This document shows, piece by piece, positions 26,314-48,667 of a stretch of DNA of 64,000 nucleotides. The number at the start of each line of letters is the position of its first letter. Position 1 is the first letter of the stretch. The DNA is from Oculina patagonica (taxonomy: Eukaryota): positions 310,001 through 374,000 of the forward strand of contig NC_135763.1 of assembly GCF_052425735.1 (NCBI RefSeq), given 5' to 3'. The notes beneath the pieces are model-generated. The model had not been told where the DNA came from. It did not search any database and saw nothing but the letters and a program-made list of their open reading frames with translations. The position numbers and the translations under genes were made by a program.

Positions 26314-26746
26314 CCCCAGGGGGGTACTCCAGCTTGTAAATGACAGGGATGATCGAATGGAGGCAAAACTCAGGACCCCAAAAATCCCTAAGTCTTCCGA
26401 CATTACCCCCCAAAAATCCCTGTATCAAAAATAACCCCCCAAAAACTCCTTTGTCAAATTACCCTTAAATTGCCAGGAGGGGCAATAATATAACACAAAG
26501 AAAATCAAAAAAATTAAACGCTAGTGTTTGTTCATTCATGATACCATAAATACGCCAAAGGCCGCACCAAGGCACTTCAGTTCGTTTTCAATACCCCAAA
26601 AAATCCCCTATTTAAATCAAGTCACCCCCAAAAATACTTACCAAATTTTCCAACCCAAAAAAATCCCGCAATCGAAAATTTCAACCCTAAAAAATCCTTC
26701 GATCATCCCCGTCATTTACAAGCCGGAGTACCCCCCCCCCCCCGGG
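26314..26746. mobile_element. Dispersed MITE; second copy at ~60759-61115
   Basis: TIR CCC.GGGGGGTACTCC.GCTTGTAAATGAC.GGGATGATCGAA; the interior is shared with 60759-61115. Confidence 0.75.
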
Positions 26747-26897
26747 CATGGAGCTTTTCTATTTACACTCTGCGCACGATATCGGTGTCTTACTTTAAAA
26801 AAAAATTGTATTATTTAAAGACTGCATGCTGCTGGGTTGTACGTTTTATGTTTTGTTGATGTATTTACAGCTTCGTAAAGGAAAAAGTGGAAGAAAA

Positions 26898-27007
26898 AAA
26901 AACTGGGGGTGGCTAGCCCTTTGGATTTCACCAAGCCGTTCCAAGTCAGGAGGCCCGCTAGGTATCTCCCATTCGCTACGGCTTTAGTATGCGGGATCAG
27001 AGATCCC
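26898..27007 (-). ncRNA. Divergent U6-like Pol III small nuclear RNA, copy 1
   Basis: 105 nt + T9 terminator; 104/105 identical to 48298-48402. Has a 5' hairpin GGGAUC/GAUCCC, AUACUAAA, GAGA-N5-AGC, an ISL-like hairpin and AAAUCC; TATA at about -24 to -32. Confidence 0.75.
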
Positions 27008-27030
27008 AGTAATTTGCTTTTCTTACGCGA

Positions 27031-27283
27031 TATATAAATCATTTCGTCTACGAAGCATCATCCATGTGGGGTGCGGTAAATAGTTACTCATTAACTTAAC
27101 TCTGTCTGAAGGCGTGTAAAAGTTGTTGATATTGCTTATCATTTTATTATAATTTGTTTTTTAATATCCTTGTAATGACAGCTAGCTGCAATAAAAATAA
27201 GAAAACAAAACAGTTTTCTTCCTGATACGCATGCGCAGTGTATCAAGAAGGTCGAATCAGCTAATTAAATATGCAAGAGAGTT
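27031..27283 (-). promoter_or_regulatory. Type 3 Pol III (U6-type) promoter: TATA, PSE-like and DSE-like blocks
   Basis: TTTATATA at about -30. Block catccat.tgg...aatagttact.at.aactt.actc from about -51. Distal TACGCATGCGCA and GCTAATTAAATATGCAAGAGAGTT (octamer-like). The PSE-like and distal blocks recur upstream of copy 2. Confidence 0.7.
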
Positions 27284-46932: not shown

Positions 46933-48292
46933 GGTTGACTTCTGATTGCAGCGGAAAAATCACAACTTTCAAATTCTTTAACAAAACCGATTCAAGTCGG
47001 CGAAGGCTTATGACCAGGAGTCCAATTCAGTTGAAACACGCATAAACTTCTGTTGATTCTCTTCCACTAAAACAGCAGATCTAGACAAAGTTAAATCGTC
47101 TTCTCGTCGGGATAGGAGAACGTACGCCAGACTGAACAAACCAAAGGCATGAACTCTGTTCTTAGCGGAAATTCGTTCTGCGTTCGCAGGCTACTTATTA
47201 TTCAACCGCTTTCTTTCCCTGGCTGAGTTACCAATAACAAAACAACCTGCTCACGTGTAAATTATGCATTGTGAAGCTCAATTCATGCTCAAAATACACG
47301 CTACGTAATCAGGATAAAGACAATAAATGATAATTAACTGCTAAAGACAACAGAACAGCACTCAAGCGGCAAGTCACAAGACTCCTGATTTCACTGCCAC
47401 TTCCTTTGATGTCACTAAGTTTACTTTTACCGCCTACTTTCGAAGTACTCTTTTAGAGAACTACCTTCCGTTGCAAAACAGAACAGAGCACAAAAAAGAA
47501 CATTTCCCGTCTTAGTTAAGGCCTATAACAGGTCGAGTACGTTAAGAGTTGAGAAACCAGTTCCAAGCTGATAGTTGCACGTTTTGCAGGAGTTTCTTAA
47601 GCATTTTTTGAGGCGCTTATACAACTGATGAAAATAACTCCACTGACAAAAGTTCTCCTGAATTAACAAAAGTTCTTGGCCGATGCAAGTTTGTCGACCG
47701 ATATAATATAAAAACGACTGAGCACACAGAGTTTCTCAGGCATTTTTATAAGCCAATTAAAACTGTCATTTACATTTCTTGACTTATTTCAAACGACTTG
47801 GTTAACTTAAGTAGACTAAGTAAACAGAGCAGGAGTATCTCAGGTATTTTAATAACACAATGAAATTTTCTTCCCTGAACTTAGACAGCGACAGAAAGAA
47901 GGCGGGGCGCGCGCGCGTGCGGGGAGGTGGGGGGGGGGGGGAGGGAAGGCTTTAAATAAAAAGCAGTAGATCCCTCTATTTTTCTCGCCTCTCAAACTCC
48001 ACTAGCTTCCACCCCCGCGCACTTCCGCCTCTGCGCTCGCGTCCAGTCCTCCCGCGATTCTTTTGGCGGACCAGTTGATGATCGAAAAAAACGGAAACAA
48101 AGAGAGCTGCGGGCGGTCTACAACTAACATAAAAATTCTCAATCGATGAAAGATTCCCGACAATCCAAAACAGTATTTTGCTATCGTGCTGCTTAATACA
48201 GCAAAAATTGTATGTGAAGACTGCTGCTGTAAAAATTATTTATTTACTACAAATTATTTATTTACAACAGTCTCGAAAAGAAGAAAAATAAA

Positions 48293-48402
48293 AAAAACTG
48301 GGGGTGGCTAGCCCTTCGGATTTCACCAAGCCGTTCCAAGTCAGGAGGCCCGCTAGGTATCTCCCATTCGCTACGGCTTTAGTATGCGGGATCAGAGATC
48401 CC
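48293..48402 (-). ncRNA. Divergent U6-like Pol III small nuclear RNA, copy 2
   Basis: GGGAUCUCUGAUCCCGCAUACUAAAGCCGUAGCGAAUGGGAGAUACCUAGCGGGCCUCCUGACUUGGAACGGCUUGGUGAAAUCCGAAGGGCUAGCCACCCCCAG + T8; one substitution relative to copy 1. Confidence 0.75.
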
Positions 48403-48424: not shown

Positions 48425-48667
48425 CTTTTTAACCATTCAGTTCAAGCAGCGCCATCCATATGGTAGTTGTTTAATAGTTACTTATAAACTTGACTCATTA
48501 AAGAGCCATATTAAAGTTGTTATTTTTGCCAACCTTCATTATTGGACCTTTTACAACAACAATATGCCGAATTTCAGCAAAACAGAACGATGACTAGTTC
48601 TTACCAATACGCATGCGCATTATTCGTCTGGACGCTCAAGTGGGCTAATTAAATATGCAAGAGAGTT
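48425..48667 (-). promoter_or_regulatory. Type 3 Pol III promoter of copy 2
   Basis: TTAAAAAG at about -30, PSE-like block from about -51, TACGCATGCGCA at 48608-48619 and GCTAATTAAATATGCAAGAGAGTT at 48644-48667. Confidence 0.7.

Follow-up and report, generated by a model that had tools for sequence, protein, structure and literature searches.

A candidate third U4/U6-type RNA pair with rewritten recognition bases in stony corals

The stretch of coral DNA analysed here, 64,000 nucleotides in length and referred to as the window, contains a 19-mer, CGAATGGGAGATACCTAGC, that occurs exactly on the minus strand at positions 26957-26975 and 48352-48370, with no occurrence expected by chance. A sequence-only reading of the window had assigned this segment to a U6-like RNA in which the bases on both sides of the catalytic GAGA are rewired, GAAUGG standing at the site of the donor-pairing bases and UACCU at the helix Ia site, and had predicted new partners or a new intron class. 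The locus thus raises the question whether it encodes a functional catalytic-type RNA with a specificity of its own or a derivative of one of the canonical genes. To our knowledge, the number of known spliceosomes has stood at two for about three decades, and each of the two has a U4/U6-type pair of its own; a search of the literature on a third spliceosome, on U6atac- or U4atac-like RNAs and on coral snRNA variants yielded no description of such RNAs.

The 19-nt segment, which can also be written CGAAUGGGAGAUACCUAGC, lies inside both copies (A and B) of an RNA of approximately 105 nt that was designated X and that also comprises the segment GAAUGGGAGAUACCU. A genome-wide search of the 529-Mb genome recovered these two copies, both in the window, and no others. 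The conserved block of the copies starts with GGGAUC (27007) and ends with the T-run, and outside of this block the surroundings of the copies align at short promoter boxes only. Within the RNA a single base differs, at position 26922, where copy A carries an A (CCAAAGG) and copy B, at the corresponding position 48317, a G (CCGAAGG); since G is the base of all orthologues described below, copy A carries the derived base. In another detail, both window copies read GGGCUAGCC where the orthologues read GGGUUAGCC. The coordinates of the deduced features are compiled in Table 1.

Table 1. Features of the X genes in the window and of the partner gene Y elsewhere in the genome.
Feature	Position	Strand	Basis or remark
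X copy A, U6-like pol III snRNA, ~105 nt before the U tail	26903..27007	-	conserved block, reads, orthologue matches
5' stem-loop GGGAUC/GAUCCC, 15 nt	26993..27007	-	predicted fold
AUACUAAA after the 5' stem-loop	26983-26990	-	distance to GAGA as in U6
GAAUGG, at the site of the U6 5' splice-site-pairing bases, directly 5' of GAGA	26969..26974	-	sequence
GAGA, catalytic part of the ACAGAGA box	26965..26968	-	sequence
UACCU, at the helix Ia site	26960..26964	-	AGAUU in U6, AGGUU in U6atac
CUAGCG including the AGC triad (26957-26959), stem I strand facing Y CGCUGG	26956..26961	-	duplex prediction
Internal stem-loop (ISL) directly 3' of AGC	26934..26955	-	read from sequence
Stem II strand facing the 5' end of Y	26924..26954	-	26 bp, four helices, predicted
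T9 pol III terminator	26894..26902	-	sequence
TATA box, about -30	27030..27038	-	position as in U6/U6atac
PSE CCACATGGATG, -62	27059..27069	-	sequence
X-specific upstream block GAGT.AAGT..AT.AGTAACTATT	27078..27102	-	kept in copies A and B and in orthologues
Distal element GCGCATGC, about -220 to -229	27229..27236	-	sequence
Octamer-like block by the distal element	about 27260-27283	-	sequence
X copy B	48298..48402	-	terminator 48290-48297; promoter pattern 48453-48618
Y, U4atac-like Sm snRNA (L042)	G000:C12:3020477-3020652	-	chromosome other than that of X; single-copy

The sequence of X follows the order of elements of U6. The 5' stem-loop is followed by AUACUAAA, which is separated from GAGA by 14 nt, the last six of them being GAAUGG. 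The ISL consists of GGCC-UCC, the loop UGACUU, GGA, a 2-nt AC bulge and GGCU, that is, 4 bp, the bulge, 3 bp and a 6-nt loop, and is followed by a small 3' hairpin, a C-rich tail and a run of nine T residues. An intramolecular pairing of CUAGC with a 3' GCUAG was also considered, but comprises just 5 bp and rests on a palindrome. In an ungapped comparison of X with the coral U6 gene (L011), AUACUAAA, GAGA, AGC and CCUG are in register over 44 nt; the coral U6 reads GAUACA-GAGA-AGAUU-AGC and X, at the same spacing, GAAUGG-GAGA-UACCU-AGC, such that UGG stands in place of the U6 ACA and UACCU in place of the U6 AGAUU. The rewiring proposed from the sequence is accordingly exact at both loci, with the U6 register kept.

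The overall similarity of X and U6 is not significant (z = 1.5, compared with z = 4.7 for U6 versus U6atac), and homology is consequently argued from the exactly spaced motifs, from promoter and terminator, and from the partner RNA. No Rfam family matched X at the gathering threshold in the window, and none matched at E<=10 when a 2-kb or a 126-nt sequence was searched. Members of RF00026 (U6) combine ACAGAGA with AGAUUAGC, the helix I strand complementary to U2, and in X these positions read UGGGAGA and UACCUAGC; the combination of a model match with the core AAGGAGAGAAGGUUAGC that marks RF00619 (U6atac) was likewise not found in X. Judged from the sequence, X does carry GAGA-N5-AGC followed by an ISL with a bulge in the 3' strand, at a spacing identical to that of U6 and U6atac. 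The genuine genes of the same genome score 114 bits (U6) and 113 bits (the U6atac genes L003 and L004).

X thus resembles U6 (RF00026, with its partner U4, RF00015) in the 5' stem-loop and the AUACUAAA motif following it, in the spacing through GAGA, AGC and the ISL, in the promoter type and in the U tail, but its stem II sequence is entirely different and the U6 covariance model gives no match. From U6atac it differs by the presence of the U6-style 5' stem-loop and of AUACUAAA, by the lack of a 65K-type 3' stem-loop and by both specificity segments, the donor box being AAUGG versus AAGGA and the helix Ia segment UACCU versus AGGUU. The layout of the ISL parallels that of both RNAs, and the bulge of the coral U6atac ISL is AC, the same as in X. 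The two coral U6atac genes, L003:1501-1628 (+) and L004:1501-1628 (-), which correspond to G000:C6:24275867-24275994 and 24214399-24214526, show a peculiarity of their own: both read GAGCCGAGAGA, while the Rfam consensus, like human, has GAAAGGAGAGA, so that GCCGA takes the place of AAGGA, the box by which U6atac pairs with the U12-type donor UCCUU. The coral U11 sequence UAAAAGGGCC still fits the standard donor.

Animals possess sequence-variant genes of U1, U2, U5 and U6 as extra low-copy snRNA genes beside the canonical ones. The known variants of which we are aware carry few base changes and still use the canonical partners, whereas in X both specificity segments are changed and a private partner, described below, has apparently co-evolved. 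The U6 variants of the same genome (L014-L018) all keep ACAGAGA and AGAUUAGC. In four of them, namely L014 and L015 (G000:C5, ~15.65 Mb), L016 and L018, the U6 5' half is intact, with ACAGAGAAGAUUAGC kept, and the ISL 3' strand and the tail are replaced; with scores of 50-73 bits these are probably decaying or chimeric U6 copies, unlike X.

The promoter provided a second line of evidence. The X copies show a PSE at -62/-61, a TATA box at -29/-30 and a terminator of eight to nine T residues, and this is the layout of the U6 and U6atac genes of the genome itself, whereas in its pol II snRNA genes (U12, U4 and U4atac) a TATA box is lacking and the PSE lies at -54 to -57. The combination of a PSE, a TATA box at -30 and a T-run that characterises pol III type-3 promoters is therefore present, and X can be classified as a pol III gene of the U6 type. 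The distal element GCGCATGC was also detected upstream of U6, U6atac, U12 and the partner gene Y. When it was combined with the PSE in the pattern GCGCATGC-N140-168-CCAYATGGATG, the genome contained three matches, which are X copy A, X copy B and Y, and a control pattern gave none.

Transcription of X is supported to a modest extent by a single small-RNA run from a closely related species. On a 601-nt stretch around copy A, 18 reads map, every one of them to the minus strand, the sense strand of X, and within 26918-27001, with none on the flanks. One third of them (6/18) start within the 5' hairpin loop, as would be expected if the native 5' end were capped and could not be ligated. Additionally, three more RNA libraries from corals or coral metagenomes contain contigs that match positions 26896-27008 only, one short contig covering 26923-27007, with 1 to 4 differences and unlike sequence beyond; since the contigs from libraries of other corals extend into the promoter, they may derive from DNA and were not counted as expression.

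To assess the conservation of X, public metagenome contigs were scanned with a pattern in which only CAUACUAAAGCC, GAGA and AGC were fixed and the rewired bases were left free. The scan yielded 12 coral-derived contigs with X, 11 of which contain intact genes, two of them identical; the ten distinct intact orthologues form at least five flank-distinct groups. GAAUGG is unchanged in all ten and UACCU is kept in nine, the exception being L087 with AACCU. The sequence-only reading had held that its proposal would fall if these segments varied among orthologues, and they proved to be conserved. The intact orthologues also contain a PSE, either CCCATATGGATGA or CCCATATGGATAA, a TATA box at -30 (TTAATATAG) and a T-run of at least seven residues. 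An alignment of eight orthologues with the two window copies showed a nearly invariant RNA body between diverged flanks. Besides the exchange in L087, variation is confined to the 5' loop, the length of the C-run and three single positions, one each behind the 5' stem, in the ISL loop and in the 3' hairpin. The 5' loops of the orthologues read UCU, CCC, UCC, CCUGC or CCUAC above a stem that is kept. The ISL stem never varies and consequently provides no covariation signal. The remaining copy, on a coral-metagenome contig (L090:2011-2240, minus strand), is mutated, has no PSE, TATA box or T-run and shows broken ISL pairs; it is probably a pseudogene.

A candidate for the partner emerged when the U4atac model was run loosely on the whole genome, which resulted in two matches, the genuine U4atac gene (L041, 60.9 bits) and the gene designated Y. 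Y scores 36.7 bits (3020477-3020639) and thus remains below the gathering score of 53 of RF00618, with E = 1e-4 on a 601-nt stretch. As neither X nor Y reaches an Rfam gathering score, annotation based on these thresholds labels neither of them. The 5' stem-loop of Y nevertheless corresponds near base-for-base to the U4atac K-turn consensus (CCC-UAU-GA...UGAGGG), and the gene further contains an Sm site, AAUUUUUGG, followed by a GC hairpin. Its PSE is located at -54 and no TATA box is present, which is the pol II pattern also seen in U12 and U4; the position of the PSE places the start of Y approximately 13 nt upstream of the Rfam match. Y accordingly unites a K-turn stem-loop, an Sm site with a 3' hairpin and a pol II promoter, and words of its sequence were found in RNA libraries of other corals from three studies. 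The genome contains U6, U6atac, U4, U4atac, U11, U12 and U2 in canonical form, so that X and Y exist in addition to these genes and do not replace them.

The complementarity of X and Y is extensive. The first 32 nt of Y are predicted to pair with X from just 3' of AGC into the X 3' hairpin, forming a stem II of 26 bp in four helices with a duplex energy of -38.6 kcal/mol (z = -5.5). When X was paired with dinucleotide-shuffled versions of Y, the mean energy was -20.2 kcal/mol (sd 3.4) and 0 of 2000 shuffles reached -38.6; the cognate stems II of U6:U4 and U6atac:U4atac amount to -23.9 and -31.6 kcal/mol, respectively. Stem I is formed by CUAGCG of X and CGCUGG of Y (6 bp, -10 kcal/mol) and covers the AGC triad. 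In the modelled duplex, stems I and II would lie on either side of the Y K-turn stem-loop and occupy exactly those sites of X that correspond to the U4-pairing sites of U6, and this predicted arrangement is that of U4-type pairing. In a three-by-three comparison of cofold gains, each cognate pair was best (X-Y -13.9, U6-U4 -14.3 and U6atac-U4atac -17.0 kcal/mol), whereas all non-cognate pairs ranged from -3.5 to -10.5 kcal/mol, with -5.4 for X and U4. The X:Y stem II contains a single U.U mismatch, which would become an A-U pair through the U-to-A exchange in the ISL loop of L081 and L113 if Y were unchanged in these corals. A U4-like Sm partner complementary to CCUAGC(G) and GGCCUCCUGACUU... 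had been anticipated from the sequence of X, and Y corresponds to this expectation far beyond chance. Y also speaks against the other ground on which the sequence-only reading would have given up its proposal, namely the lack of both a complementary Sm-site snRNA and an enriched donor class.

The second expected partner is a U2- or U12-like RNA. UACCU cannot form a canonical helix Ia with the U2 (GAUC) or U12 (GCCUU) of this genome, so a partner carrying AGGUA is expected, and the sequence-only reading had likewise called for an RNA with GCU...AGGUA. Against the U2 and U12 5' regions UACCU yielded trivial helices only, and a 6-bp pairing of AGAUAC of X with the U2 branch-site region (GUAUCU) was at chance level. 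Searches at E<=10, with some 40 to 50 candidates scored for each model, returned the three canonical genes only for U12, the two canonical genes only for U11 and, for U2, the canonical arrays along with fused U2 5' ends, in none of which AGGUA was present. The genome pattern of an X/Y-type PSE followed by AGGTA produced 7 matches versus 6 of the control and no plausible Sm site, and GCT-N0-2-AGGTA-N40-70-RATTTTTG produced 141 matches versus 80, an excess that is at least partly due to dispersed repeat families. The commonest repeat (GCTAGGTAATTCCCC...) was rejected as a transposable element, since ~600 to 850 nt are conserved in six copies and no PSE is present. This repeat, represented by L128 (G000:C1:92611-93465) and by no fewer than 20 further sites, contains GCTAGGTAATTCCCC...AAATTTTTG, which mimics the complement of X and an Sm site. 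Among the matches listed (100 of 141), five single-copy candidates of the AGGTA/Sm pattern were retrieved and also discarded, as none of the five has a PSE at the right distance. A scan of the window and the retrieved loci for a PSE, RGGTR and an Sm site recovered a U4 gene and Y only, in agreement with the earlier statement that no partner RNA lies within the window. Within these models and patterns, each of which presupposed one particular architecture, the prediction of new partners is half confirmed, as a U4-like RNA was recovered and no convincing U2/U12-like one emerged.

Taken together, these data are best read as evidence that stony corals possess a third RNA pair of the U4/U6 type, X and Y, that is under selection, and the rewritten recognition bases of X together with its matching U4-like partner hint at a form of the splicing machinery that has not been described. 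The closest parallel is the U6atac/U4atac pair (RF00619 and RF00618), which likewise combines a pol III RNA with GAGA-N5-AGC and a bulged ISL with a pol II Sm snRNA, uses stems I and II and a U4atac-type K-turn 5' stem-loop in the Sm partner, and is encoded by few gene copies beside the major pair. With moderate confidence, we regard X as the U6-type RNA of this third coral pair, held by Y and most likely serving as the catalyst of a variant spliceosome on distinct substrates. In such a mechanism, pol III would produce X from its U6-type promoter with the catalytic elements of U6 and U6atac (GAGA, five nucleotides, AGC and a bulged ISL) retained, and Y, as a pol II transcript of the Sm class with a K-turn, would keep X inactive in a duplex by means of stems I and II. 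GAAUGG and UACCU would act as selected specificity determinants that exclude the U2/U12 helix Ia partners and the usual donor pairing. Once freed from Y, X would most likely be the catalytic RNA of a variant spliceosome with a distinct substrate set, using a U2/U12-like partner or a substrate strand that carries AGGUA. We infer that a di-snRNP forms in vivo and that X is catalytic, and the new intron class of the original prediction would be the set of introns served by it, with predicted donors of the form YYRUUY at +4 to +9 or, in the alternative put forward by the sequence-only reading, with AG|GUAUC read directly in the manner of U1.

Among the alternatives, the one that survives best, although we consider it unlikely, assigns X and Y to the known minor spliceosome as an alternative di-snRNP that serves part of the U12-type introns together with ordinary U11, U12 and U5, helix Ia being replaced by another contact. 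Y is indeed U4atac-like, the UGAC of the X ISL loop resembles that of U6atac, and corals are rich in minor introns (PMC10639083), and the canonical coral U6atac has GCCGA instead of the AAGGA donor box while U11 still reads the standard donor. Placed in the U6atac register, AAUGG of X would pair with UCCUU slightly better than the coral U6atac does, but this pairing includes a mismatch and two wobbles, and UACCU can form neither a helix of the AAGG/CCUU type with GCCUU at the 5' end of U12 nor the U2 helix (GAUC). Slightly less probable again is a non-catalytic regulatory particle, either a decoy that titrates tri-snRNP proteins (SNU13, PRPF31, LSm and SART3) or an RNA whose invariant 5' half pairs with a target outside of splicing. 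The searches yielded no U2-like partner or substrate, and the 5' half of X is wholly invariant in the orthologues, beyond the catalytic bases, both of which are in line with a regulatory particle. A decoy, however, would not need GAGA-N5-AGC and a bulged ISL at the exact U6 spacing, and the strict conservation of these elements over diverged corals fits catalysis better. A third alternative, in which X would be a pseudogene or repeat that arose from U6 and is decaying, and its match to Y a chance resemblance, is very improbable and contradicted by the data, since against the one promoter-less mutated copy (L090) stand a near-invariant RNA body and promoter boxes between diverged flanks, sense-only reads, two genome copies, the complementarity to Y (z = -5.5) and a promoter signature unique to the X copies and Y.

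Beyond the preferred reading of X and Y as a third pair, a more far-reaching proposal can be put forward tentatively: stony corals may run a third spliceosome composed of X, Y and further U2/U12-like and possibly U1/U11-like RNAs, acting on private introns or in a trans-splicing-type reaction, with donors that pair with GAAUGG (about YYRUUY at +4 to +9). If so, no other spliceosome type would have been added between the description of U12-dependent splicing and this one. As a selected pair with its own promoter signature and co-adapted pairing surfaces, X and Y would represent a natural experiment on how the specificity of a catalytic core gets rewired, and they suggest that reef-building corals, in which minor introns are unusually numerous (PMC10639083), have introns that escaped recognition or carry out a new RNA-processing reaction.

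Two minor observations were made in the course of the analysis. The fused U2 5' ends returned by the U2 model (L067, L068, L071, L073-L075, L077 and L078, mostly at G000:C1 45.77-45.94 Mb) comprise the first ~25-31 nt of U2 together with the U2 promoter flank, joined to unrelated, protein-coding-looking sequence, and resemble retrotransposon insertions that target U2 genes. Just downstream of copy A, positions 26560-26745 of the plus strand consist of short A-rich units similar to AAAAATCCC and end in C12/G-rich homopolymers; the C/G homopolymer motif recurs next to the L128 repeat, and the run probably represents a further interspersed element.
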